A stretch of 64,000 nucleotides of DNA, taken from positions 2,232,001 to 2,296,000 of the forward strand of contig OZ116706.1 of the NCBI GenBank assembly GCA_964199315.1. Reading direction: 5' to 3'. Each line of letters starts with the position of its first letter. Positions within the stretch are counted from its first letter, which is position 1. This document shows positions 1-56,692 of this stretch, piece by piece. Source of the DNA: Orbicella franksi (taxonomy: Eukaryota). A model generated the notes under the pieces. That model saw only the letters and a list, made by a program, of their open reading frames with translations, had not been told where the DNA came from and searched no databases. Both the position numbers and the translations under genes were made by a program.

Positions 1-303
1 ACGAGCAAAGCAGTGCAACTGATCCGCAACAATCAGCAGAATACGCTACAACAATTATGCAATGAACCATAAACCCCTGCAAAACCTCTGACAGCCACCC
101 CACAGGTCACGTACTCCCAAATGCGGAAACCGCTGGCTGCATAAGCTCATATTTAACTTGCCTAAATGATATTAGCTGGATAGGCATGCTAGCTGGCTGC
201 ATTAGCTCAAGTTTAACCTTGCCTAAATGATATTTGACCACATATACCATCTGCAGATAGGTAATTAACAAGTATCCATCTGTTGTCAGCTTACTGATAA
301 AAC

Positions 304-667
304 AGAGCTTAAGAAACCACAACAGCAACGGCCATGAGAATGCCACCAAACAAAAGGTTTAATGAGCAGAACAGTGGCTGTGCACGTGCATTATAAATCT
401 TTGTACATTTCTTAGCCATTCTCTGCATAATAATGTGAAATGACTATGTTTTGCATATTTTGGAGAATGCAAATGATGGTGGCTAATTCTTCATAGTTTC
501 ATTTGGAATTGAACACTGGTGTTACATACTTAGCTTGAGCAAGTTCTGAGACCAATGGGTATGCTGTACAGATTGGGACAATTGCAAAGTTCAAAGGTAC
601 ATTCAATATAAATTCATTTTCTACCACGTATTGTCCCTGAGGTTGCCGTCATCATTGCTTAAGCTCT
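304..667. mobile_element. MITE-like non-autonomous DNA element
   Basis: Terminal inverted repeats AGAGCTTAAG...CTTAAGCTCT; related copies at 34203-34565 (inverted) and about 38565-38710 (fragment). Confidence 0.7.
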
Positions 668-733
668 CTCACAGAATACACCAAGTAAAATGTACATAAT
701 TATAAGTAATTTACCACATTATTGAACACCTAC

Positions 734-3700
734 CAGTCTTCCCTGGGTCTGTGTGAACGGGATCATTGTTAAAATCTTGTTTTCCTTTGTGTACATACAA
801 AAATGTTTATTCCACGTGTATGTACCAAGGCTACCTAAAGTGGCCACATAAGAAAGCAGATCAGTTGGTGTTTCAGCAATTATTACTTGGTCATTTGACT
901 TTTACATGTTGCTATTTATGTACTTTTTTTTTGGAGGGGGGGGGGGAATTGATGTAATNNNNNNNNNNNNNNNNNNNNNNNNNNNNNNNNNNNNNNNNNN
1001 NNNNNNNNNNNNNNNNNNNNNNNNNNNNNNNNNNNNNNNNNNNNNNNNNNNNNNNNNNNNNNNNNNNNNNNNNNNNNNNNNNNNNNNNNNNNNNNNNNNN
1101 NNNNNNNNNNNNNNNNNNNNNNNNNNNNNNNNNNNNNNNNNNNNNNNNNNNNNNNNNNNNNNNNNNNTTACATCAATTCCCCCCCCTCCAAAAAAAAAGT
1201 ACATAAATAGTAACATGTAAAAGTCAAATCCATGCCCAGAGCCCTAGCTATTTTCATGGTCATGAAGATACTGTACCTTTCTTTTGGACACCGAGATACC
1301 CTTGTCTTGTGTGGGCTCCGCGATACTGAAGTTCACCACTTAGGGCTTTCTGAAGAGAAAAGAGAGTGCTTTAGATAATATAAATGTGTGCACTCTAGAA
1401 ACCTAAAATCCTTGGGTCTTTGGCCTGCACATTCAAACCTTAGGCAAAGTTTTTCTGTATATAGACATGCTCCTGGTATATAACAATGTATAGTTTGTAG
1501 CTGTATTGTGGATGAATGCGTTACTAATACAAGTAGCCGAAAAGTGGTGTTTACCTGTTGCACCCGACTCATCAGGCTTGCAGCTTCAATTTTTGTTGTG
1601 TCAAATCTCTCTCTGGTCTGAAAAAAAATATATGAAAAAATACCATGAATAATGTAACAACAGCAATAACAACAAGAAAACACAATTTCAGGTCAATTTC
1701 ACAGGGTATTGACTGAGCTGATCGTTATGACGCGCCATAACATTTGAGCCGAAGAATAAGATGTCTAGCTCTCACACTAAGTCAAAATACATGTATGTAG
1801 GGTAAGGATCTACATCTACATGTTTTGACCAAGAATTTATACTCACATTTTGAAGTCTGAGTTGAAGATCTTTCATGAAATCCATATAATCATTAAATAC
1901 TTCATGGCCTGATAGAAACAAAAGTTTAGTAAACAAATATAAATAACACCAGAGGAGTAGATTTTTTAACAAGAAATAGTTAATGTTAGTAACGCAATTA
2001 TTGTTTAACTCTGGAAAAATCCACTGGCACAATGAACACAAAACTACGAAATCCTTACCGCTATGATAAAAAGTAATGTGTCCATACATAAAAGATAAAA
2101 GCTGAAAGAAAAATAAGACAATATTATATGGTCAAATGTCACCTACAGATGGACACCATTTGTAAGCAGATGCTTAGTTATGGTCCTAGCCACATACAAA
2201 CAATACTAAATATAATATCGTGCCACTATAATGGTACCTTAGATTGAAATAATACAATTCAAATTACTGTTTAAAAAAAACTGCAAGCAGCTGAGGTTTT
2301 TTATATCTTTGCAAAAACCTGATTTCAAGTGAAGATAAGAAAACATTTCATTTTTAGCAGAACATTATAATTTATGGTGTAATTAGCCCATTGACGCCTG
2401 TACCGCCCGTAACCATCCATTTCCCTGTGCCACCCATAACCGCCCGAAAAAAGCACGTGGGGACAATTGCCTTTCCTACCCTCCCTGAAGAATTTTTGGT
2501 TCTCCGGTTGCTCTATTGTTCTTGAGTACAAATAAACCAATCAGAATGGACTTTCTGAGCATATTTTCAGAGGACTTTAGGGGTCCTAGAAAGACTTTTT
2601 TCCTTCTTAAAATCGTGCGCTCGAAAAGTGCAGGTAATCATGGCGCGTCTTAAAACTTCCAAGGTCTTGTTTTCATTCCTAACACAGATAAATTACTGAT
2701 TTGGGCTTTAAAATAGAAAGGAAAAATACAAATCAATGTTTAGGTGGCCTCAGAATGGAGGATCAAGGAGTAGAGTCCTCAAAACTTTCTAGTGAAGAAG
2801 TTTTTCTTCCTACAACCGCCGCGAAAACATGAAGATCGGAGCACTTTCAAGTAAGTTTTGACAACAGATCACAGATTTAAAGCAGCTTTTTGGACTTAAG
2901 AAACAAATGGTAATGTACATTATTACTTTGACGCTGAATTCAACTTTTGAGACGATTGATAAAGCCACGGGCTTTAAAATGACTGCAAAAGCGGTCGGCA
3001 AAAACTCAAGCTTTCCCGTTAGTGTGAAGAATAATTTGAACATGAGGCTCACACAGCGAAGAACGTCTGCAAAATTTTGGGTAGGAATTAGGGGTAGGTC
3101 ATGGGCAATTTCATTCAGGCGTCAATGGGTTAAAAGAAATTAAATGTCATCTTAGAAATCAACTTACGGTTTCCACAAATTCAAACTTCTTTTTCTCATT
3201 AACTTCCTGAAGTTTGACAACATAATCTAGAGCTGTTTGGTGAAATGAGCGTTTCTCATTCTGAAGCTGGGTATCCGCCTGAGTGTGCAAACAACATATC
3301 TAATGAGTTAATCAAATATCCAGGACAATGACAAATAAATTAATAAATAAATAAATCACAACATTTAGAGAAGAAACCACATCAGTCTTAGCTGGTTTTC
3401 ATGTGGCTCTTCTATCCTTGTTGAATTGGAATTTTAAGAAGTTGGTTTTTGTGGAGGGGGAAAAACCCTTGGAGCAAAGCAAGAACCAACGACAAACTCA
3501 AGCCACATACATGCATGGCATCGAGCCAAAATTGAACCCGGGCCACATTGATGAGGCGAGGGCTCTCACCACTGCACTACTCCTGCTCCCCTAATGATAC
3601 CCAATGATATCCAGGGTGAAATGTACTCTTGTTATAATTCATAGTCATTTCAGAGCAACAAGTTTCAGTTACTGTAATTACTCTAAGAATTGTCACAGTG

Positions 3701-6700
3701 CTTGGTAAATGTTTTGAGGCAGGGACACAACCCAGATTGAATCAACTTGGGTCGTTGATTTACTTAAGAATAGCAATTACATCGTGTATTCGAGAATGAG
3801 GCAGATTATTTGAGGGAAACTATTTCAATAATATCCCCTAAAGGAGGTAATAATTTTATTCAAGTGGAGCCATTACTCTAGCGATGGATGTTATTCAAGT
3901 AAACATGGTCTTACATCATTCAAAAATGAATCTTTCTTTTTTGAAGACAGATTCAAGTAGTTCTGTACTGCTAAACAGTATTTTTCAGTCTGCTTGTCAA
4001 ATTTCTTCTTTTCCTCCTACAAGAAAAAAACAGTCTGTCAGGAATTAAAATGTAATACATGTACCAAACAAAATTAAAATTTAATCTTTTTCTTTAGAGC
4101 ATTATCAAGAAAACAGGGGTTTTGGACGAGTTTCGTTTATGTCAATATTTTTATGTTGCCTCAAAGGAACCTAAGAATCAAACCTTGCCAGACAAGAATC
4201 ATGTAACAATAAATGTAAACACAAAAGAACTTTTGTACCTTTGCTCCACCAATCTGCTCTTTTCTAAATGTTTCCAGTGGTATAATCAGCTGGGCATTTG
4301 CATGATTTAACTGGTGGCAAACAAGTGTCATGAGGCAATTAACTCAACTCAGTAATGCATCAGTCAATGAATCAATCAATCTATCTTTATTTGTACTCAG
4401 TCTTGCTCAAAATAAAAAAATTACAACAATGAAACTACTAAAAGTAAAAATTAGAGTACTAGCTGCCTGGAATAACCATAGGGGCTAGCAGAGCCAGGCA
4501 GCCAGTTAACATCAGCATTAAATAGAAATAACCTACAGGTCAGCAAGAAAACTGAAGCACAAATTCACATATAAGATGAAAAATAGAAGAGGAAAAATGC
4601 TATTTCTACGCCATGAAAGAAGTCTAAAATAGTTAAATTCAGTGCTGGTGAAGTGACTACAACTACACATGCAACATAAAGTGACCACAAGCATTCCTAC
4701 TCGTCTTGAAATACTATCATAGGTCAAATCACTATTTTTGCCAAACACATTGTAAATATGGTTGGACAATTATCAGCATTTAATTAAGCAATTTGCATTC
4801 AGCTAATAAATTTATAGCCATACGTGAGGTAATAAGAATGCTTAGCAATGTACCATGGAGTGTTCATTCCATGTTAAAGCATTCCTGGAGAGTCTATTTG
4901 TGCCAAAAGAAAACACACAGATCCATATGTTTTACAATTTTAAGCATGTTTTAAAGGAAACAAGATCTGCAAACAAGATCTTTACATTAAAAAGCTAACT
5001 TAAGTCACTTTGGTCTTCAGACAAATTGTCTTTCTGTATTGAAAAACTATTCAGACAATATAAAAGTTTGGTTGGACAGTTTCCACCACAGTAGCTGCAG
5101 TTAAAAAATAATTTTAGTTTGAGTCAGTAAAATCTGCCATGTATATCACTATGTTTGGGTTGGTATGTCTCACAGGTAGCCCAATGTGTTAAAAAGGTAA
5201 TTGTGAGCCCTGCGGCCCCTATATTTTGACAAGTTGCTAATAATAACTGGCTAATACCCATTTATACTCCCGACATATCTTGTTGTATCCATTGGTTCAA
5301 TATATCAAACATAGCTCTTTTAGTACAATTTCAGCCATCATCATGGATCAAATAACTGACCATGTGGATTGTGGGCTCATGCAAATAACTTTGACCCCCT
5401 TCAAGAGCATACAGGACCCACCCTACAAGGAACTTCCTACAGTGGCCTGGTTAAAACCCACGCGTGTGACCTCATGCTCCACAAATTAGCCATTAAGACA
5501 CTACATGTACATGTACATGACAAGAACTTGTTAAAGAACAAGATGATTTATAATAACTGACTTACCATTCTGTCTCGTTCATCTTCCACAGTGTCAATCA
5601 TCTTGCCAAACTCTTTTAGTGCCTCAGCTAAAAAATAATTTGAATTCAAGGATAGAATCATCTAATGAATAAGAAATAATCAATCATTGCTCACAGAATT
5701 ATTTCAAGTCACTGTCAGTGGTAATTTTTCCAGGCATAATTTCAATTGCACCAGCAACATACACAAAACTACTGAGTAAACGTTTTGTTGAGCAAGGTGA
5801 GCTCTAATACATGTATGACTTCTGTGGGTAAAGATTTTTGGTGGCAAGCAGCCACACATTAACCCTACCCTGTAACCTGTAACAAAATCTCCAACTAAAC
5901 AAGGGATGTCAAGGTCCCACATATGGTTTATTTTTGTGCTTACCCTCGCTCTGAAATATTTTAAAAAATGCCAGGGAACTAGGGGTGGGTTGCGGGCAAT
6001 TTAATGCAGGCGTCAACGGGATAAGAAGCATAATTCAGCTTACCAATATGTATTTCATCATCAGTCTCCACCTCTCCAATACACTCAAATCTGAAGCCAT
6101 CTAGCACTTGTGCAAAACTCCTCTGTGCTCTGGATAAGTCTACAAAAAAACAGGACAGAGGACCACCCAATTATATTATGATCACAAATTATTGTTGCTG
6201 CGCCTTCTTAAATAATGCTTTCTGTATGCATGATCAATTTCAAAACACTCATCTTGACTACAAATTTACATACATGCATGTCCAGTACAATTGCAGTAGA
6301 TTGACATTTAACTGTGCACCAAACCAAACATTCTTAAAATTCAGTTGAACTTATAGAGGACAACAAACCCCTTTGAAAATGAGTTAACTACACATGTATG
6401 TAAGCAAAAATTACCTCTGACTGTAGGCATAAGATATCTATAAAAGATGTAAAAAATAAGGCATCGAGCAACTGAACCATAATATGCAAATAACTTTTAG
6501 CTGGTATAATGATAAATTATTTATTTCTACCACTAATAAAAAAGTCATTTCTACAATTAGAACTATATTTAGCCATTGAAACAAAAGACCTACATTGTAA
6601 TTCACTGAGAAAATAATCAAGAAAAATAACTTCTCTAGAACCACAGAACACCTTGGAACAAAATACAAAATGTAACTTTAAAACATATAAACAATTGAAA

Positions 6701-10175: not shown

Positions 10176-12632
10176 TTATGTCTCCTCAACTTCTTCAGAC
10201 ATAAGTCTTAGATAAACTCTTCCGGGTCCCTTGTTCTTGTTTCCTTTATTAGAAGGTGACAGTCCAGAATTATACGAGCTTCCTCCTTCTGCTCTACCAC
10301 CTTCCTTACCATTACATTCCATCCAGCATCCTTTCACACCACCTCCCGAGTACCCTCCCCCTGCGCCAGGCAGTAACCCCGCAGCACCACCCCCACCAAA
10401 ACCTCCCCGGCCCATCTTGCCATGCTCAAAATTTTCGTAAGCTGGTACTGCTTCTCCCCCATTTCCACCATCCATGAAGCTCTTGCCACCCCAACCTTTG
10501 TACAAGCCAACTCCAGCGCCGTACATGCCTCCTCCTGTGCCAGCTATCACTTTATGGTGACCGGTGGAGTTTTTAATGACTGTTTCGCTGTCGTCGCTGC
10601 TGTCCAGGAGTTTCCCGCCATTGCCCTCCCTACCGCTGAAACTTGAAGGAGGTTCATCGTTGGCTCTCCCGCCTCCACCATTTGTTTGAGAAGCTAGAAA
10701 ACAGTCACAAATAAATGTAAGAATTCGCTTAAACCGACGCGAAAATCTTTACGGAATGAAGCTCAAATCCAGTAACTATGAAAGATCAGTGTAACCTGAC
10801 AGACGCTAATCCTCACGGCGGCAACAACTCAAGAACGAAATTTCATTCAAAAACGAGCGATTTGGAAATTACAGCGTTTGCGGAAAATTACAAAAATAAG
10901 GAAAGGAATGCATTGAAAATTTTGAATAAAACCCTAGCTATTTAAAACTAAATCTTTTACCCAAAACTTAAAATACAACTAACGGGTCGCTGTATCGATT
11001 GAGACTGCACTCATGTTGTCTTTAATGATTCATATTTAACACATACATGCATACTTACTTGCTTTAGGAATTCCACCCCCTCCCCCACCGCCAGCAACAA
11101 GAAGTGGCTTGCCATCTTCGTACACAACAAAGGTTCCGCCCCCTCCTCCCCCGGGACGATGAGGATCAACGGGATCACGTGACCCCTCATGGCCAACCAA
11201 AATCTTTATCACTCTGCCTTTGTGCAGCAAGAACTTTCCTTTAACAATAGCCCCAAGTCCTCCCTGCTTACGATTCGCTGAACTTCCGACTAGTATCCCA
11301 TCAGCCCCGGAGGCCCCTCTAGCTTCGATGGACCAGAGACCGGAGACAGGGACAGTCCAGAGCTGAATTCCCGGATGTTGAAGGGACACTTTAACTTCCT
11401 GTTTGAGGTATCCGTGGTATTTGAGTCTGGTAGGACCAAAACGTCCGACAGCGCCATTGTTTGTCAGCACTCGAACTTTACATGTTGGGAATGAAAACAT
11501 ATTAGACTGCAATGTTAGTGCGTGTTTTGTAGGAAAATATGTGTCAGGAGAGTTATCGAATCTTGGCTCAGCGCAACAATCTTTTACAACCTAAAGGAAA
11601 TTTTCAAATTACTACAACAAGTATGGCTCCTGGCTGTATTCTCAGCTGTTACACGCGCGCGCGCGCGCGCGCGAGCAGCCCGTAATTTGCTTAACCACCG
11701 AAACGCAACACAAAGAAACATTTGTCTGCTCGATTGCTACTATGTAACCTTAGTGCTAGCTAGTTTTCACCAGGTACATGTATAAGCTTAAGCATAAGCC
11801 GACATGCGCAGACGTAGAAGAGTGCTCCTAAGTAGCGCAATTTTCCAAACAAAAGTTACTTTTTATCAACATCTTACTGCGTCCAAGTATGTCGGCTTGT
11901 ACTTTAGTGAAAACCTGAACGCTCCAGGATGAAAATACAGTCTGTTCTGTATTTTGCAGAAAGTTTACTGCAAAAAGTTCATCGGAGATATCACTTTCGC
12001 GGCAACTCTCGAGAAGGATGAAATACGCCAAGACAGGTAGTTTACCAAAAAGACAGCAACAAACAAATTTACATTGAAACCTAAAAGTTATAGATCAGTA
12101 AAAAACTGATTGAAGAAGGAGAAAAAAATAAAGACGTTGGAGAGCAAAACCTCGAAAAGAATCAAAAGGATTATATGATCCCGCCCAGGAAAAACATATG
12201 AACGTATTCGTGGGAGCAAAGCTGCAGGAAAGCCGCGCAGGGACTTCAGACTTCAGAGTCAAAAGTCCGAGGCCTGTAGTTCCTCCCAGCTTTCGTAGCT
12301 GAGTCAGAGAAAAATAAACGACAATTTGCACATCGTATGACTTTTTTCAGGTTTCGAATTCAAGTTATTGCATAGTAATTCAACTGTATAACGTTGGTTT
12401 TCCACCATAGTTTGTGCGTTAACTCTGATTAACCACAGTTTGCAGGCTTACCTTCAAAATTCGTTTCTTCTTTTGCGTCATCACTAGAATCTCCGAATTT
12501 GTTTAAGACTTTCAAAACTATGACAACTACAGCTACGCAAACAACTACAACAACAATTAACCCAACCACCTTTTTTATCAACGCCTTATTCGAGGCGTTC
12601 CTAGCCGCCGCACCCGCCGAGGCAGCGATCAT
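10176..12632 (-). CDS. Type II membrane-anchored ALK/LTK-like glycine-rich-domain protein without kinase (~371 aa, 3 exons)
   Basis: Exons 12632-12452 (signal-anchor KKVVGLIVVVVVCVAVVVIVLK), 11475-11059 (GRFGPT..GIQLWTVPVSG..IEARGASG..GGLGA..G.F.L..ILVG..GGGGGGTFV..LLVAGGGGG) and 10693-10176 (GGFGGGG..GAGGGYSGGG..GGSSYN). Phase-1 GT-AG introns join them in frame, 1116 nt in total. Confidence 0.82.
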
Positions 12633-15324: not shown

Positions 15325-28228
<12,904 letters not shown>

Positions 28229-28542: not shown

Positions 28543-29559
28543 ATGAAACGAGAACACGTGTTGAGCTGTAATTTTTCAGTGTGGTACCCCAAGTTCAAGA
28601 ACATTACGATCAGAAGTCGGGTAATTCCTCTTTCGAAGGAGTTTGTTGATTATTTAAAGGCTGATAACGTTGTTTTGCCTGGTCAACCTGTCGTCACGAG
28701 AGATTCAGACGAAGAAATCGAGAGCGACTCCGAAGAATGGCAGGCTTTGGACGAAGATCCAAACGAACACACGATCACAGCTCCCGAATTCAATGAAATT
28801 GATTCTGCAATCAAAGAAGCTATAATTGAATTAGACGGGGCTGTCTTCCCTAAATTGAACTGGAGCTCTCCACTGGACGCTTCTTGGATTTCTTGTGATG
28901 GAACACTGAAATGCAAGTGTCCAAATGACATCTATCTTCTACTCAAGAGCTCTGATAACATATGCAGAACACTCTTTGAAACTTTCAAGCACTGTGAAGA
29001 TGGAGAAGGAGCGTTGGAGAATGGCTTTGAGCTTGTACTTCGGAAATGGAAGGATATCAATCCAGGAATGGAATTCCGGTGTTTTGTGAAAGACCACAAG
29101 CTGATTGCGATCTCCCAAAGAGACATTGCAAGCTGTTATGAATTCATTGAACAAACTGAACAGGATATTTGCAGTGATATAGCAAACTTTTTCAAGAGCA
29201 AAATTGCTTATAAATTTCCTGACAGTTCTTACACATTTGATGTGTACAGATCTGCAGGTCAGAAGGTTTTACTGATCGATTTTAATCCATTTGGGGCTCA
29301 AACAGACCCCTTGTTTTTCACATGGGATGAACTCAGCGATCCTTCCATGTCCGTCAGTGATAATGATGATGAGTTTAAAGGTGTGTTTAAGTACGTAACA
29401 AGTGCAGGAGGGGTGCAGCCTCATGCATCTCACTTAAGCAGAATGCCAACTGACATTGTTGATTTAGCCTGTGGCAATGACATCAATAAATTAGTTGATC
29501 TTCTGAATTTAAGAAATTTGATTGGACGTTCTGGCGATGAATCAGATGAGGACCAATGA
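28543..29559 (+). CDS. CDC123: Cell division cycle protein 123 (ATP-grasp eIF2 assembly factor), single exon, 338 aa
   Basis: [83 protein letters not shown]; uninterrupted ORF. Confidence 0.96.
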
Positions 29560-30469
29560 AAGTGGAAAATGGAAAAATGTACTACTGCACAGTCTAGACT
29601 GAAAAGAATGTCATGTAGATTTCATTTGCACATCATTTAAATTAAGCTTTTAACAAGAGAGGTCATGTAATATACATGTACTGGTGAGGCATCCTGAAAG
29701 TTTCACAAATGCTTGAATACTGTAATTCTTGATAAAAATTACTGAAACATTGCATGAAAAATAAATTTTGTCCAATACTGCAAACCTTAATGTCCCCAGT
29801 AAGGTCTTCTGTCACATTTGACAAGACTGTAGCTGTTGAAAAGAGAAATAAAATTATGTTTTAAACACAAGAATAAACTCCTTTGTTAGGGTATTAGTCT
29901 CCTTCGCAGCTGTTATTAGGGTCGTCACACAACGCTTCTCCCCCACTAACTATATGATACCTTGGGAAATAGCTGAAACTCTTCATGGTTATTGATAGTT
30001 CAGTTCTTGCTTTCTATCCATCATCCAACAATATGCTCCTGCTCCTATTCTCGTCCACAATGACTCTCTCACAATTACAAAAGTTCTCACTTGCATTCAT
30101 TTTGCAGATAGGTCTTTTTATTATATAGAAATGCATAGTTTACTGGAAAATACACCACTCTAAAACTATGAAACTACAGCCCCCATATCTGGGACCTGAG
30201 TGGCATATTTAAATCAGATCTCATTAGTGAGGATATTAATGATGTCATTTCCTATCTTTTCTCTTTTGTTTGTGCAGACAGTCAGTTCTTCCATACATTA
30301 AAAAGAAAATTACACAGTGGTTTGAAAATAAGAATCTTATTTTCTCGTGTTAAAAACAACATTGTACTCACTCGCTGTGCTCTTTCTTAAAATATTATTT
30401 CCATCACTCGCAAATAATTTTCATATCTCTGTGCCACCCCTAAAGTAACTCCAAACGAGTAGGACTGGA

Positions 30470-30501
30470 GCTGACTGATTGGCCATCTTCCACTATTCAG
30501 A
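30470..30501 (+). promoter_or_regulatory. Candidate proximal promoter/5' region of the RtcB gene (reverse CCAAT box and YY1-like motif)
   Basis: TGATTGGCCATCTT about 20 bp upstream of the ATG at 30502; motif match only. Confidence 0.3.
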
Positions 30502-33500
30502 ATGTTTCGATGGAAGGTTTCTCATTTCCTCAGTTTGCCAAGTGAGAGTAAGCAACTGAGTTCTTTGATCAGGAGAGGAATTGCGATCAGAAGGAGTTTG
30601 AGTTATGTGACTCTTGGCGAAGGAAAGAACGTAAGATATGGTTCTAAAATAGCTAAAATGTAGCGCTGTTTACGTGAGTTCAATTTGTAAACAATATCAC
30701 GTTTTTCACTAGACAGCAATAAGCTAACCTCACTTACAACGATTAAGCTGTCACTTCCAATAGGGCACTGCAGAGGCATTGTAATACATTTTTATCCGTC
30801 ATAATTACGGCAAACTTACGTATAAATCCTGAAATACCCCGTTTGTTAGTACTCACTTTATGGACAAATCTCTGTGAAAGACTTACTTGTCAGAGCAAAG
30901 TCCCTGGGCCCCTGGCGGGGGGAGGGAACCCCCTGAAAAATTGGGTGGCGGTGTGCGGCGCGCTTCCCAAAACCCTTGCCCCATTTATGACCATAATCTG
31001 CTATTTTCCCTTTCCTATTCATGACCTGACTAAAAATTTGATACCCTATTTATGGCCATTGCGGCTAGCACAGTTGCTCTAAACATAATTTACGAAGGGC
31101 TTTTGTTGATGGCAGTTTTGTAATTCCACATGTGAAATTATAAATTAACACTGAAACTTTGCGCCAAAATTAAGGAGTAATTTTTCACCCATGATATTGA
31201 AGGAATAATATAATGTGTATTTGCCACTTTCCTTAGTTGTTTTAAAGCTTTCTAAGTATTAAAGTACTTTGTTTGGTAGAAAGGTGTACCAGTTAAAGCA
31301 TGGGTAAAGGGTGTTCCTGTTGAAAAAGATGCCACAGATCAACTGCTGTCTTTGGCGAAGTTGCCAATCATCCACTCGCATGTGGCAGCCATGCCTGATA
31401 TGCATCTTGGGAAGGGTGCATGTGTTGGTTGTGTCGTTGCTACAGTTGATGCAATTATTCCTGCCGCAGTTGGGGTGGTAAGTACGAACTTTCATGAACA
31501 ATGATATACAAGCTTTAGGTTTCTGTCTGGACTGTATGGCTATACAGGATGTTAGTCAGTTAGGGACAAATCCTCAGACTCCTCAAGTCATAGTAGATGT
31601 ACAAAATGAGGCTGATAAAGTAGAACCCAGTGATCGAAGATCTTTTAAACATATCCTTTGGCTAATAAAACAGATTTATTGAGGGTATTCTATCAATAAA
31701 TGCAAAAAATTAAAAGCCATCTTTGTATTCTGAAGCTCTTCTATCCAGTCATGGCCAGAAACTTATTTGCATGGTACATGTTTGTCATGTTTAATTATAA
31801 AGGACCAAAGTCATCATCATCATCACAACATGGTGTTATGACACCAATAGTGCGAGTACATGTCCCGCCATTGTGCCCTGTATGCTGCCATGGACTCAAG
31901 ATCTTGATCCGTTCCATTCCATTCCATTCCATTTCATCCTAGTTTAGCATCACGTTCCACAGCATCTCTCCATCGAGCGTGACACCTTCCACTTCTTTGC
32001 TTCACATTCTCAGGCCTCCATTGTTGGGAAATCTTTGTTGACCCATAAAGGACCAAAGCTATTGTTTAGAAATTGTGGACATGAAATGTTGCATAAGATG
32101 ATAATAGTTTTGTTAAGTTTCCTTTAAAGGATTATACTTGCATAAATTTTGCCAAGCAGAAGCTGTGATGAGAAATAAAGTTTTAAAAGAAATGTTTGGC
32201 AATCATTTAAAGGAGCACACACTTCTCAAGGACAGATAAAATTTAGCTTTTCGTTCACTTTTTAACTAAAGGACATTGGATGTGGAATGATGGCAGTTAG
32301 GACAACAATGTCAGCAGAACATCTGCCAGATTCACTGAAGAACCTTCGAAGAGCCATTGAACAAGCTGTACCACATGGACGAACCAATCAGGTGCATTGT
32401 AAAATACATATATTATCATATTTCCTTTATTGTCATTCTTGATACATTGTGCAGTTCCAGAAAATTTCCATACTCCCTCCACAGAAGGGATTACAATTTC
32501 CTGGGGGCTTGGGGATTCTGTAAGACCAAAAAATTAAAGATTGTCATGTATGATGCCTAATTATTGAAATTTCCAGAGGGATGAGGGGGATCTTTTAAAA
32601 AATCCCTTCTGTGGGGGAGGTATGGATAACTTTTGGAACTACGCATTTTTATGATCAACATCTTATTTCTCTTAACAATGTCCACACACTGTCAAGTTGG
32701 CAAATGATGAGCTGTATTTCCTGTAATGGATCATGTAGAGAGGCTCCACCTGAAAGGATTTTTTAAGGGGAGAGGCTGGAGGTATACAAATGGGCTGGGA
32801 ACAAAATGATTTAAGTATAGCAGGGGTTACAAATACACCAAATTTGGTGTATTTTAGATGAAAAAGTTGTCTGTGAGTCCAAAGAATTTCTAAAGAGAGT
32901 TACTTTGACTTTAATGTAGAGTCCAGAAATGTGTAGTAGAATTTTTTTTCTGCCAGTCAAAATTTTAATGATTGTTGGATTAAAAAAAAAATTCTTAATT
33001 GACCACTCCCCCAAAGGTGTTTGTAAGTGCCAATGGAAACAAATGATGAAACAAATACAATGTCAAAGGAACATAACATGGTTAAAAATCTCAACTAGTA
33101 GGAGGCGGACCAGTTAGCTATTTACAAGCACGGCCGAGGAGTTGAACTCGGGACTACTGAGGACAACATCAGCCAGTGGTCAGAATGGGACTTAAATCCC
33201 AGACCTCCGCATTTCAAGTCCTGTGCCCAAACTACATGTAATTGACCACGCTGCCTCCATTTGCATCATTTGAATGAAGTTTGTCCATTGCTGTTTGTGT
33301 AACACATTTGCTACTGCTTGTTGTTTCAGCCACAATGTTTGATTGTAATCATTTTGCAACAGTTCAATCTCCTTTGTATGCATTTTCATCTAATGGTGAC
33401 ATGAATTACCCACCTTCCATGACCCTGCATTTTCAAAATTGTCTACAAAATTTGTGGAGAAGGAGTCAAAGCATGAAAGGGACTACAAAGGGTAAGAAAA

Positions 33501-36500
33501 GATCTAAACCCTGCTATAGAGAAGGGTCGGGAAAATTAAAACATACATTGGTATTTAAAAGGGCTTTTAATGGTGTAGGAAATGGATGCAGTATTTTTCA
33601 AGATATGTGAAAGGTTTATCCATTCATTTTCCATGAAAGGTACATTAAAGGGTTCCTTTTTCTGTCAAACATAGTATATAAAATAATGGAAAAAGATTTG
33701 GCTGTTCCCTGTATAAAACTTTGTTCAGCAGTGCTCTACTCCCTTTGACTGGGGTTATGTGTCACATTAGCATGACAAAGACTGGTGGTTTAACTCAGGG
33801 TTAAAACCTAACTCTTAATTTTGACCTCAGGGTGGCAAAGGTGATCTTGGAGCCTGGAAGGCAAGCGGCATTCCAGACTCTGTTGTGACAGAGTGGAATA
33901 AACTAAAGAAAGAATATGAATACATCTGTAGTCGACAACCCATGGCCAAGGCAAAGAACAATGCTAATCATCTGGGAACTCTAGGCACAGGAAATCACTT
34001 CATTGAGGTAATTATGTCGTTTGGGTTAATATACAATGTTGTTGTCAACATTGTTTTGTTCCAGAAAATATCTATACCCCTCCCACTAAGGATGTTTTGG
34101 TTTGAACCCCCCACCCTATCCCCCTGGAAATTCCAGTTTTGATTCACAATTTCTTTTGAAAATTTTGGCTCTTGCTACCCCCCTCCTCCTTGGAATTTTC
34201 AATAGAGAGCTTAAGAAATGATGATGGTGATGTCAGGGACGACACCTGGAAAAAAAATGATTTTATATTTTACCATGGAATTATCTAGATCTGCTCACTA
34301 CTTCATGTGGTCTTAATCCCTACTCAAGCTAAAGATGTAATGCCAGTGATCAATTCCATAAGAAAATACAAAAAAAATTAGCCATTGTGGTTCATGTTCT
34401 CAAGATATGCAAAATTTGGTCATTTCACGTTGTTGTTTTGCCGAGGATGGTTATGAAATGTAGAATAATTTATAACACACTGCATAACAATTGTTCTGCT
34501 TATTAAACCTTTTGTTTAGTGAGGTTGTCATTGCAGTTGCTGTTGTGGTTTGTTTAAACTTCCTAATAATCCTCCTTTGGGTGGGGGTGTGGGTATTTTC
34601 TGGAAGCACACATTATGATGATTAGGTTTCCTGGCAGTAAAGCAGCTGGCATGTGAATAATATTGCTGATGAGTTCTGAATGATGCTTCAGTGAAATTAT
34701 GCGAGATACAGTAGCTCACAAGACACCCAACAGAACAGTAAAACAGTATGTCGTCAATGATAGGATCTCCCTAGAAAGTGAAAACTGTCACTCTTTTAGG
34801 ACTGGCATTTTTTCTTTGAAATTTATCTCAACTGTTTTTAATTCTCTTTAAGATGTGTCTTGACGAGGAGGACATGGTGTGGTTCATGCTGCATTCAGGG
34901 TCACGTGGGCCAGGGAACAGGATTGGAACAGTGTACATTGAGCTTGCCAAGAATGACATGCTGAAACTAGACAAACAAGTAAAGGTATAAGCACTTTTTC
35001 AAAACTAATATCTCACTGTTATAATGTGGAAGGTACAATAACTATGACATTTGTCTAAAAGGTTGATGGTTTGCATGTAACGTTTCGTGCAACGTATTTC
35101 GCAGTTTTGTGGCTCTGTTACGGGGCAAAGTTAGTCAAATTGTGCAAAATGTTTCTAATTTGTCCAACCTACAAATATTTGTAGCAGCATTGCAAAGAGA
35201 GGGCCTGGGGGGCCGCCATTTTGTTCACAACGGTATACTGCTAGGCTACTCACTATCTACTAAACAATTCTATGAGGTAATAGTTGATGAGGCCGAGGGC
35301 CGAATCAACTATCACCTCATAGAAATCGAGAGCAAATAATGCAATTGTTTTAGTAGAATTCTAATTAGACTTTCCTTCAAATAACGATTCCAATTATTTC
35401 TGGTCTCAGTATTAAACTTCACGCTTTAGAGAGTTCGCGCGGACTGAATGGTCAATTTGGCATTTGCAGTTGTGTACGCGCTTATCAGCTTCTTTCAAAA
35501 ATTTCGAGCTTTTTTAATTCAAGAAACCGTAAATGTCCTCCTTTTAGTCTTCTCAGGAGTTTGAGTATCTATTTATTTCTAAATGTTCTTTCAAAACTTC
35601 GGAGAAACAAGGAAACGTTGCAATTTTGTCGACCACACCAAGCCACTGCACACTAATGGTCGATAGTGTGCAATGGCTTAGCCAATCAGATTGTAGCATT
35701 CGCATTAGTATCCTACATAAAAGAATTCTACTAAAACAGAATAGATAGTGAGTAGCGTAGCCAATCAGAGAACGGCATTGGTGACTGAATGCTATTGGCA
35801 TTATACTAAAGAGGATTGTCTCGTGATAACTGTCATGTATAGATGTACCACGTGACTTGAATATGGAGTGCAAGGATAAAAATGTGCAAGGAAAAAAATA
35901 AATAGGGGTTATTAAAACTTTTGATGACTTTTGAAGGTGAGAAGTTTGTATGGTTTGTTTCATTTTATCCTTCCCAGGTTGAAAAAGATCTAGCATACCT
36001 CAGTGAGGGCTCAAAGAACTTTGAAGACTACGTATTTGCAGTGACATGGGCGCAAAAATTTGCTCGTATCAACCGCTACATAATGATGTCCAATGTACTC
36101 AGAGCGGCGCATGAATGTGCAGATATGCCGCCATTTGATGTGGATCCATCGAGCAAGGCTGTCAATTGTCATCACAACTACGTCAAGGTGGAAACGCATT
36201 TCGGAAAAGAAGTGTTTCTAACGAGGAAAGGAGCAGTAAGTTAGTTGTAATGCTCAAGTGAAGGATGTAGCGATGTTGCTAGTCTCAATGAATTTAAGTG
36301 TGCCCTGGTAGAACTGCATCGCAAGTAATAGTTCTTGTTTGCACGCAAAAGGAATCTGGCGTCGAGTATTTAGATGTATCTCAAGCGAGACCCCAAGTTT
36401 TCTAATTTTGCGTATTCAGACCTTTCAGTTTTCGTCTCGAGTCCCTTAATGAGACAACGAGCCTGAGTTTTCTGAGACCGGATAATGAACGAGGCGCTGC

Positions 36501-37836
36501 TCCGCTGAGTATCGTTCATAAAATATGAAGGCCAGTTGTCAGATAAATTAGCTATTTTAGTCCAAAAATCAGAATAATTTTCCCTTTGAACTTGAAGGTA
36601 ACGCGCACGCTTATGGACAACGGCAGGAGCTAACATCGTTCCTCAAATTAGATAATGTCCCGCAGATAAGTATTCAAGTATGCGAACTTTTAGTTTTCCC
36701 GCCATACGGACGTTATTGTCGTTATTGCCGATTTAGAAATGGAAAATAGCGAAGGACGATTGTTTTGAATTTCCCTTAACCGTCACGTTTCTGCTCGTCA
36801 CGGAGAGTTAGGAATCATACCGGGATCCATGGGAGCACGGTCGTTCATTGTCAAGGGCAAAGGAAATCCTGAAGCTTTTCACAGGTATGTTTTGAAGTTT
36901 CGGAAAACAGTGAAATTTCACAGCAAATCGTCGTAAACCCGAAGAGGTTCCGATTCTTATCCTTCAATCAGAAATTGCACTTGTGACGTCAGCTCGTGTG
37001 ACGTCAGCCACGCCATTGGTTCCAGGAAACCAATGCAAACCCTTTCCTGAAGACTCCGGGCTCACTAAATGTTCGGTGCTTTTAACTGCGTGTTATTTTT
37101 TATTATGCGGTAAGAGGTGGTTTCAACTTTTTACATAGATAGATAATATTAAATTACACAGAAAAATACAAGAAAAGTTGCTTTCCACGAATGCCGTGCC
37201 TTACAGAACTTATTTGAGTAGACGTTTGAATTGCCCAAGGGTCTCTGCTCCCCATAGTCACAAGGAAGACTGTTCCAAAGAATGGCGACACCATAGCTAA
37301 AGCTATTTTTGTAATAGTTTGTGCGCGGCAATGGAACATTGAGTTTATTCTCGGAGTCCCTCAGGTTATATGCGGTTTATCGCTTTTCAAATTTAGAACT
37401 TAGATAGTCTGAAGATAACCCGTGCACAGACCTGTAAACGATCGTAGCTCTTCGAATTTGCTGTTAGCAAGCTAGATTTTTCCAGCGTAGGAGTTCAAAT
37501 AGGTGACCAGTATCTTTTTCGTCTACGGATGAAACCTTCGTATGTGACCACTCAAATGCAGCAAAGTTTGTTATGCTCGGTCTAAATGATTCTATTTAAT
37601 TTCTCCGCAGTTGTAGCCACGGTGCAGGAAGAAGCATGTCTCGAACCAAAGCCAAGAAAATGTTTACAATTGATGATCACGTGAATGCGACACAAGGCGT
37701 GGAGTGTCGTAAGGACGCTGACGTCATTGACGAAACACCAATGGCGTATAAGGATATCGATGACGTCATGGCGGCACAGAGTGACTTGGTAGACGTTGCT
37801 CACACGCTAAAACAAGTGTTATGCGTGAAGGGATGA
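30502..37836 (+). CDS. rtcB: Bacterial-type RtcB RNA 2',3'-cyclic phosphate/5'-OH ligase with an N-terminal presequence, 8 exons, ~445 aa
   Basis: Exons 30502-30630, 31280-31477 (VPVKAWVKGVPVE..AMPDMHLGKG..IIPAAVGV), 32272-32391 (DIGCGM..VPHGRT), 33831-34007 (HLGTLGTGNHFIE), 34853-34984 (WFMLHSGSRGPGNRIG; alternative donor at 34978), 35978-36235 (DLAYL..NCHHNYV..TRKGA), 36787-36884 (VSARHGELGIIPGSMG), 37611-37836 (CSHGAGRSMSRTKAKK..DETPMAYKDIDDVMAAQSDLV..LKQVLCVKG*). Co-linear with recalled E. coli RtcB. Intron 6 ends in AC rather than AG. Confidence 0.95.
30900..31110. mobile_element. DNA-transposon-derived repeat fragment in RtcB intron 1
   Basis: GGGGG..AAAAATTGGGTGGCGGTGTGCGGCGCGCTTCCCAAAACCCTT..CCCTATTTATG subrepeats, recognised from memory as a common anthozoan repeat end. 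Confidence 0.45.
31810..32050 (-). mobile_element. LINE (RTE-like) 3' fragment in RtcB intron 2
   Basis: Minus-strand translation QQWRPENVKQRSGRCHARWRDAVERD resembles the RTE ORF2 C-terminus; (TGA)n tail. Confidence 0.5.
32448..32645. mobile_element. MITE in RtcB intron 3
   Basis: TIRs TGTGCAGTTCCAGAAAATTTCCATAC...GTATGGATAACTTTTGGAACTACGCA. Confidence 0.65.
33060..33258 (-). mobile_element. tRNA-derived SINE in RtcB intron 3
   Basis: Minus-strand head GGAGGCAGCGTGGTC...GGATTTAAGTCCC with a body containing GAGTTCAACTCCTCGGCC. Confidence 0.55.
34052..34612. mobile_element. MITE (same family as 32448-32645) with a second MITE nested at 34203-34565, in RtcB intron 4
   Basis: Outer ends TGTTTTGTTCCAGAAAATA...TATTTTCTGGAAGCACACA; inner TIR TAGAGAGCTTAAG matches the 304-667 family. 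Confidence 0.65.
35268..35790. repeat. Hairpin-bearing interspersed repeat in RtcB intron 5
   Basis: Hairpin TTCTATGAGGTAATAGTTGAT-loop-ATCAACTATCACCTCATAGAA and further internal inverted repeats. Confidence 0.55.
37150..37350 (-). mobile_element. LINE (L2/CR1-like) 3' fragment in RtcB intron 7
   Basis: Minus-strand LPRTNYYKNSFSYGVAILWNSLP, typical of the CR1/L2 ORF2 C-terminus, followed by a GCACGGCATTCGTGGAAAGCA tail. Confidence 0.75.
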
Positions 37837-38346
37837 CAAGCCAAATTGGAATCTGGTCGCTTTGCCGGGTGTGTCGGTTTTGGCAAATTTTCGTCGAAGC
37901 ACTCGTCAAGTTTGCGATTTATATTATCCAGTCAATGAAAAGCACGAGCACACGAGAGTCTTCCGAAACAAAGAATCACATCAGACGTATTTGTATTCCG
38001 GAAGTTATGACGCTGTCTTTGACAGGTGGCGGTCAAGAGGTAGTTATGAACTGACACTCAAGGTCCGCAAAATTTACTGACAATTGAACCTCGATATCCT
38101 CGATATCTCTCTCTCGAATTTAAATATTTTCTCCATGGATATAATTTTTTAGTCATTTACTATGAGCTACCTCAAACTGTAGCTGAGAAATCGCCTAAAA
38201 TTTAACTGTTGGCTAAGATTTTAAAACCGCACATCCAGTCCCTTTGTTCACAACGGTCAAGCGAACTGCGCGTGCGTAGCCCCCAAGATAACGTCATTAT
38301 TTTCTGAATCTTCCACATACAGGCCTTGAATGCCTAAGGTAACACA

Positions 38347-40819: not shown

Positions 40820-41236
40820 TCAGGATTCGGAACCGTAAACGAAAGCCACCGGAAGTTTGACTTGAACCCATTTCCACACTATTTCCCCTGTTTTGACGTC
40901 ACACCTCTGCACCAGGCCTCTGTGGTGAAATAACACTGGGCGACAGTAATGCTCACAAAAAGAACAAACGGCCTTGGTCAGGAATCGCGGAACACGATTT
41001 GGGTTGTCATCTAGGGCCCATCTCCAAGGGCACTTGCTGGTGCCTGGCATTGTCACGTCACGACTAACACGTCTTGGAATTTCTAGCGTTGTCTGCAATG
41101 AGGAAGAAGGCTTCTCGACAAACAGGAAATCACGACGGAGAAATGCGAGTTTCTTTCGAGCATTTTGATGGCTGTTGGGGCAGTTAAGCGCTTGTAGAGA
41201 AGAAATCTGGGTTATCAACATAACGACGCAAAGCTT
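40820..41236 (-). CDS. IL-17-like small secreted cystine-knot-family protein (main exon; a short upstream first exon is probably missing)
   Basis: CPWRWALDDNPNRVPRFLTKAVC..C...CRPV...LVQRC...W.WVQVKLPVA resembles the IL-17 core. Hydrophobic KLCVVMLITQISSLQA follows a TTTCAG acceptor at 41237, and an in-frame stop lies just upstream of that acceptor. Confidence 0.68.
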   Translation of the reverse strand, partial: KLCVVMLITQISSLQALNCPNSHQNARKKLAFLRRDFLFVEKPSSSLQTTLEIPRRVSRDVTMPGTSKCPWRWALDDNPNRVPRFLTKAVCSFCEHYCRPVLFHHRGLVQRCDVKTGEIVWKWVQVKLPVAFVYGSES

Positions 41237-56456: not shown

Positions 56457-56692
56457 ATCATATATGAACTCAGTTAAATGGCTTTGCTCTCCATGAGTTC
56501 TCGTAGCTCAGTGGATAGAGTGCCCGCCCGGTGTTCGGGAGGTCATGGGTTCGATTCCTGTCGGGGACTCAGAATCTTTCTTTGTCCCACGCTCGTGTCA
56601 TGTTGATTAATTCACCTTCACAAATTTTTGCCGTGTTTTTCACTCCCCCAAGCAAGTTGAACTAAGATGGCGTCCGAAACCGTGAAAAGGCC
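55867..56692. mobile_element. MITE hosting the tRNA-like insertion
   Basis: TIRs GGCCTTTTCACGG..GCCATCTT / AAGATGGC..CCGTGAAAAGGCC, flanked by TA. Confidence 0.65.
56303..56622 (+). mobile_element. tRNA-like partial-tandem retro-insertion (one 261-bp unit plus ~59-bp terminal redundancy)
   Basis: 13-bp TSD AATTTTTGCCGTG at 56290-56302 and 56623-56635; internal tRNA-like cloverleaf at 56495-56570 with A box (TAGCTCAGTGG) and B box (GGTTCGATTCC). Confidence 0.88.

Follow-up and report, generated by a model that had tools for sequence, protein, structure and literature searches.

The canonical RNA ligase of animals, RTCB, carries out tRNA and XBP1 splicing, and in the usual view animals depend on this one RtcB-type ligase complex. 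The partners of canonical RTCB are DDX1, CGI-99, FAM98B, archease and PYROXD1 (PMC13247085). Among eukaryotes, a bacterial-type RtcB with a mitochondrial location has been described in diplonemids, kinetoplastids and Naegleria (PMC12699882; reviewed in PMC13247085). Here we describe a bacterial-type RtcB gene in a stony coral. It lies in a 64,000-nucleotide stretch of the Orbicella franksi genome (assembly GCA_964199315.1, contig OZ116706.1, positions 2,232,001 to 2,296,000 of the forward strand), the whole of which is called the window in what follows. A reading of this DNA made from the sequence only had proposed that it encodes a second, bacterial-clade RNA ligase, acquired by horizontal or organellar transfer and fully domesticated. 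That interpretation is supported by the present analysis and is essentially right, with 'second' presuming a canonical RTCB in the same genome: we consider it likely that this is a nuclear stony-coral gene for a bacterial RtcB1-type RNA ligase, acquired once from a bacterium in the stem of Scleractinia and inherited vertically since then.

The exon model was obtained by joining candidate exons after reading positions 30200-38200 of the window. Eight exons at 30502-37836 on the forward strand join in frame into 1338 nucleotides, corresponding to 445 codons and a stop codon:

Exon 1, 30502-30630, forward strand: residues 1-43, with an ATG and a GT donor; an extension of about 33 residues, then about 10 residues homologous to bacterial proteins.
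Exon 2, 31280-31477, forward strand: residues 44-109, with PVKAW...MPDMHLGKG...AAVGV between AG and GT sites; Pfam RtcB positions 1-47, E 3.5e-14.
Exon 3, 32272-32391, forward strand: residues 110-149, with DIGCG, which carries the metal-binding Asp110 and Cys113.
Exon 4, 33831-34007, forward strand: residues 150-208, with GTGNHFIE, which carries His205.
Exon 5, 34853-34984, forward strand: residues 209-252, with LHSGSRG, which carries His222 and Arg226.
Exon 6, 35978-36235, forward strand: residues 253-338, with NCHHNY (His317 and His318) and TRKGA; Pfam E 5.6e-21.
Intron-6 acceptor, 36785-36786, forward strand: reads AC, with C at 36786, in place of AG.
Exon 7, 36787-36884, forward strand: residues 339-370 plus 2 nucleotides, VSARHGELGIIPGSMG; the junction at 36787 agrees with the cDNA-like contig L009.
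Exon 8, 37611-37836, forward strand: residues 371-445 and the stop codon, with SCSHGAG, which carries the guanylylated His374, and the C-terminal CVKG; Pfam E 4.8e-25.

The eight exons, the frame and the 445-residue protein with all the RtcB motifs listed by the sequence-only reading stand as it had given them; what does not stand in its splice model is the acceptor of intron 6, which the frame requires and which in this copy is AC. Introns 1-6 are in phase 0 and intron 7 is in phase 2, and six of the seven are GT-AG introns, the exception being intron 6. Scanning the window for Rfam families and tRNAs gave no match within the gene.

Exons 2-8 match successive parts of the Pfam RtcB family (PF01139), in order, over profile positions 1-426. 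The orthologue of Orbicella faveolata (XP_020604146.1, "uncharacterized protein LOC110043074", 445 residues), which is 98.7% identical to the window protein, differing at 6 of 445 residues and sharing its N-terminus, matches the same profile with 409 bits (E 3e-122). An alignment of the spliced protein with RtcB of E. coli K-12, taken from NC_000913, spans 406 residues at 58.6% identity (E 8e-176). E. coli residues D75, C78, H168, H185, H280, H281 and H337 correspond to D110, C113, H205, H222, H317, H318 and H374 of the coral protein, all of them conserved, and so are R189, R341 and R345. The metal-binding and guanylylation set, with residue roles as assigned in studies of the E. coli and P. 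horikoshii enzymes, is invariant across a 22-sequence alignment.

An AlphaFold2 model made from the O. faveolata orthologue has a mean predicted local distance difference test score (pLDDT) of 88.7 and a predicted template modelling score of 0.87. All 16 matches at E <= 0.001 in a PDB search with this model are RtcB or RTCB chains. The model superimposes on E. coli RtcB (P46850) with template modelling (TM) scores of 0.88/0.96, a root-mean-square deviation (rmsd) of 1.8 Å and 57% identity, whereas for human, mouse, zebrafish, C. elegans and archaeal RTCB the TM scores are about 0.75/0.67, with an rmsd of 4-6 Å and 22-28% identity. The solved RtcB/RTCB structures of the PDB search are 22-26% identical to the model, and identity to human, zebrafish and C. 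elegans RTCB is about 24%. Profile scores follow the same division: a profile made from the window exon translations and the two closest bacterial homologues reached only 137-152 bits against solved canonical RtcB/RTCB, compared with about 800 bits against close bacterial relatives of one template, and in a first profile search, with two bacterial templates and the window exons, the matches were limited to Acidobacteria-like relatives of one template. Judged by profile, catalytic residues and predicted fold, the coral protein belongs to the RtcB family. The E. coli-like TM scores and identity, together with the low identity and profile scores against canonical proteins, assign it by sequence and model to the bacterial RtcB1 (E. 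coli) type and not to the canonical animal (HSPC117) type; an identity of 24% and an rmsd of 4-6 Å are not the similarity expected of the canonical RTCB (HSPC117) clade. The likeness to E. coli RtcB claimed from the letters is thereby borne out.

Proteins 59-65% identical to the coral RtcB are encoded in 80 named bacterial genomes, which span Myxococcota, Acidobacteriota, Planctomycetota and Alpha-, Beta- and Gammaproteobacteria. As a separate observation, the nearest bacterial relatives include proteins of 587-650 residues in which ribosome-binding factor A (RbfA, PF02033) is fused to RtcB (P0006, P0479-P0490, P0502, P0512, P0522, P0526, P0530 and P0561), a fusion suggestive of a repair function tied to the ribosome in these organisms.

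Annotated orthologues from other corals were retrieved with a profile weighted towards coral sequences; identities are to the window protein:

Oculina patagonica (P0599): 91%.
Pocillopora damicornis (P0597), P. verrucosa (P0601), P. meandrina (P0598) and Stylophora pistillata (P0600): about 84%.
Porites lobata (P0474) and P. evermanni (P0476): 82-83%.
Montipora capricornis (P0473) and M. foliosa (P0609): 83-85%.
Acropora millepora (P0614), A. muricata (P0477), A. palmata (P0618) and A. cervicornis (P0619): 81-82%.
Desmophyllum pertusum (P0592, P0595): fragments.

The gene is thus common to the robust and complex clades and to all main stony-coral lineages.

In the window, the start of the RtcB gene is preceded by about 0.95 kb by an intronless CDC123/D123 gene (28543-29559, forward strand; Pfam D123, E 2.5e-99). 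This neighbour is 99% identical to the protein cluster that contains O. faveolata XP_020604148.1, and its more distant clusters are those of Desmophyllum (90%), Pocillopora and Stylophora (81%), Porites (77%) and Acropora (73%). Exon 6, searched against 1.8 billion representative proteins, matched exon-sized open reading frames (ORFs) of other coral assemblies at 76-94% identity, and each of these ORFs reads on into the intron at the same donor. On contigs of other samples, 0.25-1.6 Mb long, D123 is followed by the same split RtcB gene, an order that is kept in L002, L003, L004 and L008. In spliced models of three other coral loci, seven introns, all GT-AG, stand at identical positions and the frames are intact. 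Two contigs from relatives are spliced transcripts, L008 (JGI 3300008006) and L009 (Logan ERR9592159); their ORFs are uninterrupted and their junctions coincide exactly with the exon boundaries of the model, 36787 among them, the exon 1/2 junction being observed in L008. The coding sequence has a GC content of 46% (43.5% at third codon positions), similar to that of the neighbouring host gene, compared with a median of 65% for the bacterial homologues. Between coral lineages, the pairwise ratio of nonsynonymous to synonymous divergence (dN/dS) is 0.05-0.08 at a synonymous divergence (dS) of 0.9-1.8, and the gene is under strong purifying selection in corals. What had been proposed as full domestication is therefore seen in seven conserved introns, an animal neighbour, a kept gene order, spliced contigs in relatives and a dN/dS of about 0.05.

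One of the transcript contigs is of interest in itself. Compared with L002, L008 (positions 1-4739) is a single transcript-like contig in which the end of D123 is connected, through about 2 kb of unspliced intergenic DNA, to the fully spliced RtcB ORF. This suggests that transcription from D123 reads through into RtcB, or overlaps it, in that coral.

Phylogenies of coral and bacterial sequences were computed in IQ-TREE (LG+C20, posterior mean site frequencies), a quick one of 115 rows and a careful one of 98 rows. Both recover the corals as a single clade (support 100/100) nested in bacterial RtcB1 sequences; its stem is long, at about 0.75 changes per site, and robust and complex corals separate within the clade. 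The bacterial placement put forward by the sequence-only reading is thus recovered among bacterial RtcB sequences, the protein is distant from canonical RTCB in identity and superposition, and spliced transcripts exist in relatives. Among the best 120 profile matches the gene is confined, for animals, to one restricted group; it is nested in bacteria and integrated in host DNA, which is the pattern of a horizontally acquired animal gene, and horizontal transfer is favoured by this apparently narrow distribution. We infer a single horizontal transfer, the simplest reading being that the gene was acquired once, long ago, before Scleractinia diversified. Their stem lineage would have received the gene from a bacterium and passed it on vertically; after the transfer, the gene would have gained seven spliceosomal introns, a host-like base composition and an N-terminal extension.

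Several points weigh against this account, in whole or in part. Restriction to Scleractinia is only suggested, since it rests on the best 120 profile matches, among which there is no orthologue from a non-scleractinian animal. In the careful tree the nominal sister group of the corals is made up of marine gammaproteobacteria with a bootstrap of 10, a negligible support, and no bacterial donor was identified there. A constraint that joins the corals to Caulobacteraceae-type alphaproteobacteria is not rejected by the approximately unbiased (AU) test (p = 0.21). The mitochondrial location discussed below is read from composition, and the window's own copy has a non-canonical acceptor at intron 6. 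The AU result would fit descent of the gene from the mitochondrial (alphaproteobacterial) endosymbiont, or an early eukaryotic acquisition shared with the mitochondrial RtcB of Discoba, followed by loss in nearly all other animals; so would the presequence-like N-terminus of the coral protein and the bacterial-type, mitochondrion-targeted RtcB described in Discoba (PMC12699882). Such a history requires very many independent losses across Metazoa, and the best 120 matches include no orthologue from an animal other than a coral. Moreover, the coral protein is 59-65% identical to proteins of many bacterial phyla and only 44-45% identical to two AlphaFold DB cluster entries, probably kinetoplastid, whose organism field is blank. 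We regard this alternative as unlikely. Bacterial contamination or misassembly, to which one might be led by closest non-coral relatives that are all bacterial, is already refuted: the frame is split by seven introns and has host-type genes on both sides, in other samples, contigs of 0.25-1.6 Mb show the same split gene beside D123, the base composition is host-like and spliced transcripts exist. We give it practically no credence.

It could also be supposed that the gene in the window is a decaying pseudogene or a null allele. Intron 6 (36236-36786) begins with the donor GTAAGT and ends in AC, and the C at 36786 would force either exon skipping, with a frameshift, or use of a cryptic AG, with loss of seven conserved residues that adjoin the active site. 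The nearest canonical AG is at 36806-7, and its use would remove in frame the conserved residues VSARHGE, a segment that depends on the intron-6 acceptor and is present in every homologue examined (as VSARxGE). A haplotig from another coral, L003, with Cys replaced by Arg at the metal-binding Cys, adds to this side. On the other side, the AC acceptor is the sole defect and the remaining reading frame is intact; the O. faveolata RefSeq model is full-length at 445 residues; dN/dS is about 0.05 across coral lineages; and a base-calling or assembly error is equally possible. Furthermore, the Logan contigs L006 and L007, which derive from other runs on this species and are 99.7-99.9% identical to window positions 35755-37285, have G at 36786, and AG is found at this acceptor in the relatives L001 (exon 6 94% identical), L002, L003 and L004. 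With AG in both of these independent read sets and in all relatives, the G-to-C change at 36786 is an individual, rare splice-site allele or an assembly or base error and not a feature of the species, in which, taken as a whole, the gene is intact. That the gene is decaying here is therefore very unlikely. A U12-type or otherwise non-canonical intron was also considered for the AC acceptor, and is ruled out by the plain GTAAGT donor and by the AG in the same species and in all relatives.

Two observations on other sequences belong here. The metal-binding Cys lies in DIGRG (Cys to Arg) in L003:7103-7222 and in DIGCG in L004:7105-7224, two near-identical contigs (dS 0.004) from the same sample, and an inactive allele or a long-read error is possible for the former. 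The nominal sister group of the corals consists of L074 (Litoribrevibacter euphylliae), L020, L039 and L073, and the species name euphylliae suggests a coral source.

Returning to the coral enzyme, its N-terminus departs from that of bacteria. Coral proteins carry about 33 N-terminal residues beyond their bacterial homologues, a variable extension that is rich in Ser and Thr and has a charge of +8 to +10, compared with -1 to -4 in bacteria; in exon 1 of the window, the charge is +9/-2. Its end is marked by a conserved R-S-[LS]-S-[YF] motif, immediately ahead of the region homologous to bacterial N-termini, and this R-S-[LS]/S-Y motif resembles the R-3 motif of the processing peptidase, a likeness judged by composition and motif only. 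In the AlphaFold2 model, residues 1-31 have pLDDT < 50 (disordered). The extension fits a putative cleavable mitochondrial presequence, a reading to which we lean slightly, and as such it would direct the enzyme to mitochondria.

By homology, the enzyme would join RNA ends bearing a 3'-phosphate or 2',3'-cyclic phosphate to 5'-OH ends. In the predicted GTP/Mn2+ mechanism, metals would be held by Asp110, Cys113, His205, His222 and His318, and His374 would be guanylylated; GMP would then move from His374 to the RNA 3'-phosphate, which the 5'-OH would attack. Both activity and substrates are thus proposed from sequence comparison. Like E. coli RtcB, the coral enzyme would act independently of archease, and its role would be the repair of RNA, such as broken tRNA or rRNA, and not the tRNA and XBP1 splicing of canonical RTCB; by analogy, an archease-independent RNA-repair role is probable. 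The strong purifying selection on an E. coli-type enzyme in both major stony-coral clades argues that stand-alone RNA repair is of use to corals. We also put forward, tentatively and as a rather doubtful extension, that stony corals import this bacterial-type, archease-independent RtcB into mitochondria to rejoin RNAs whose ends bear a 2',3'-cyclic phosphate and a 5'-OH, following a transfer that preceded the split of complex and robust corals. The targets might be, for example, tRNAs imported from the cytosol, or the organelle's own rRNA and mRNA cleaved during stress. Anthozoan mitochondria encode only one or two tRNAs, and fragmented mitochondrial transcripts are not known from corals. If mitochondrial import and repair were true, this would be the first known case of a mitochondrial RNA ligase in animals; a mitochondrial location would also make it a parallel to the bacterial-type RtcB of kinetoplastids and diplonemids and would bear on RNA maintenance in anthozoan mitochondria.

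Elsewhere in the window, weak Pfam matches were found to interleukin-17 (E 4e-4, ORF at 40820-41221, reverse strand) and to the ALK/LTK glycine-rich domain (E 3.5e-6, ORF at 11036-11512, reverse strand); from these matches, the two ORFs appear to be further animal-type genes flanking the RtcB locus. An uninterrupted ORF of 732 residues at 18628-20826 (reverse strand) has no Pfam match, is located in the most GC-rich part of the window (49%) and adjoins a tRNA-like Rfam match at 18442-18514 (forward strand); this region may be a mobile element. A tRNA-Thr (GGT) at 56497-56570 (forward strand) was called by both ARAGORN and Rfam.

With regard to novelty, the claim stands in one part and falls in another. 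No paper on this gene was found in the literature on RtcB with coral or cnidarian terms, and the list of 41 candidates for transfer into corals given by Bhattacharya et al. 2016 (PMC4878875) does not include it. However, the gene is already annotated in public databases (in RefSeq for many corals), most orthologues being labelled "RNA-splicing ligase RtcB-like", although apparently nobody has studied it. The weight of the finding is lowered by this annotation across corals, by an enzyme type that is known and by the eukaryotic precedents. What it offers is a clean and easily tested case of ancient transfer from a bacterium to an animal, absent from the published coral transfer list (PMC4878875).

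Among known systems, the closest enzyme is E. coli RtcB (RtcB1), to which the coral protein is 58.6% identical across the whole 408-residue bacterial protein, without large insertions and with the C-terminal CVKG in both; RtcB1 of Myxococcus xanthus and other Myxococcota homologues are 60-65% identical to it. Unlike E. coli RtcB, the coral protein begins with about 33 additional residues of basic character, and its gene is nuclear, with seven introns, whereas E. coli rtcB sits in the rtcBA operon under the control of RtcR, an arrangement that the coral gene does not share. Canonical animal RTCB (HSPC117), the catalytic subunit of the tRNA ligase complex, is of the same Pfam family, chemistry and overall fold as the coral protein; however, it has about 505 residues with extra elements and 22-26% identity, and the coral protein belongs to the other clade. 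The nearest eukaryotic counterpart is RTCB1 of Discoba, which is likewise an RtcB of the E. coli clade encoded in a eukaryotic nucleus; in those organisms its location is mitochondrial, by prediction or as shown, and a canonical RTCB exists beside it (PMC12699882). The host lineage differs, the coral being an animal, and the coral acquisition was probably independent of that of Discoba.

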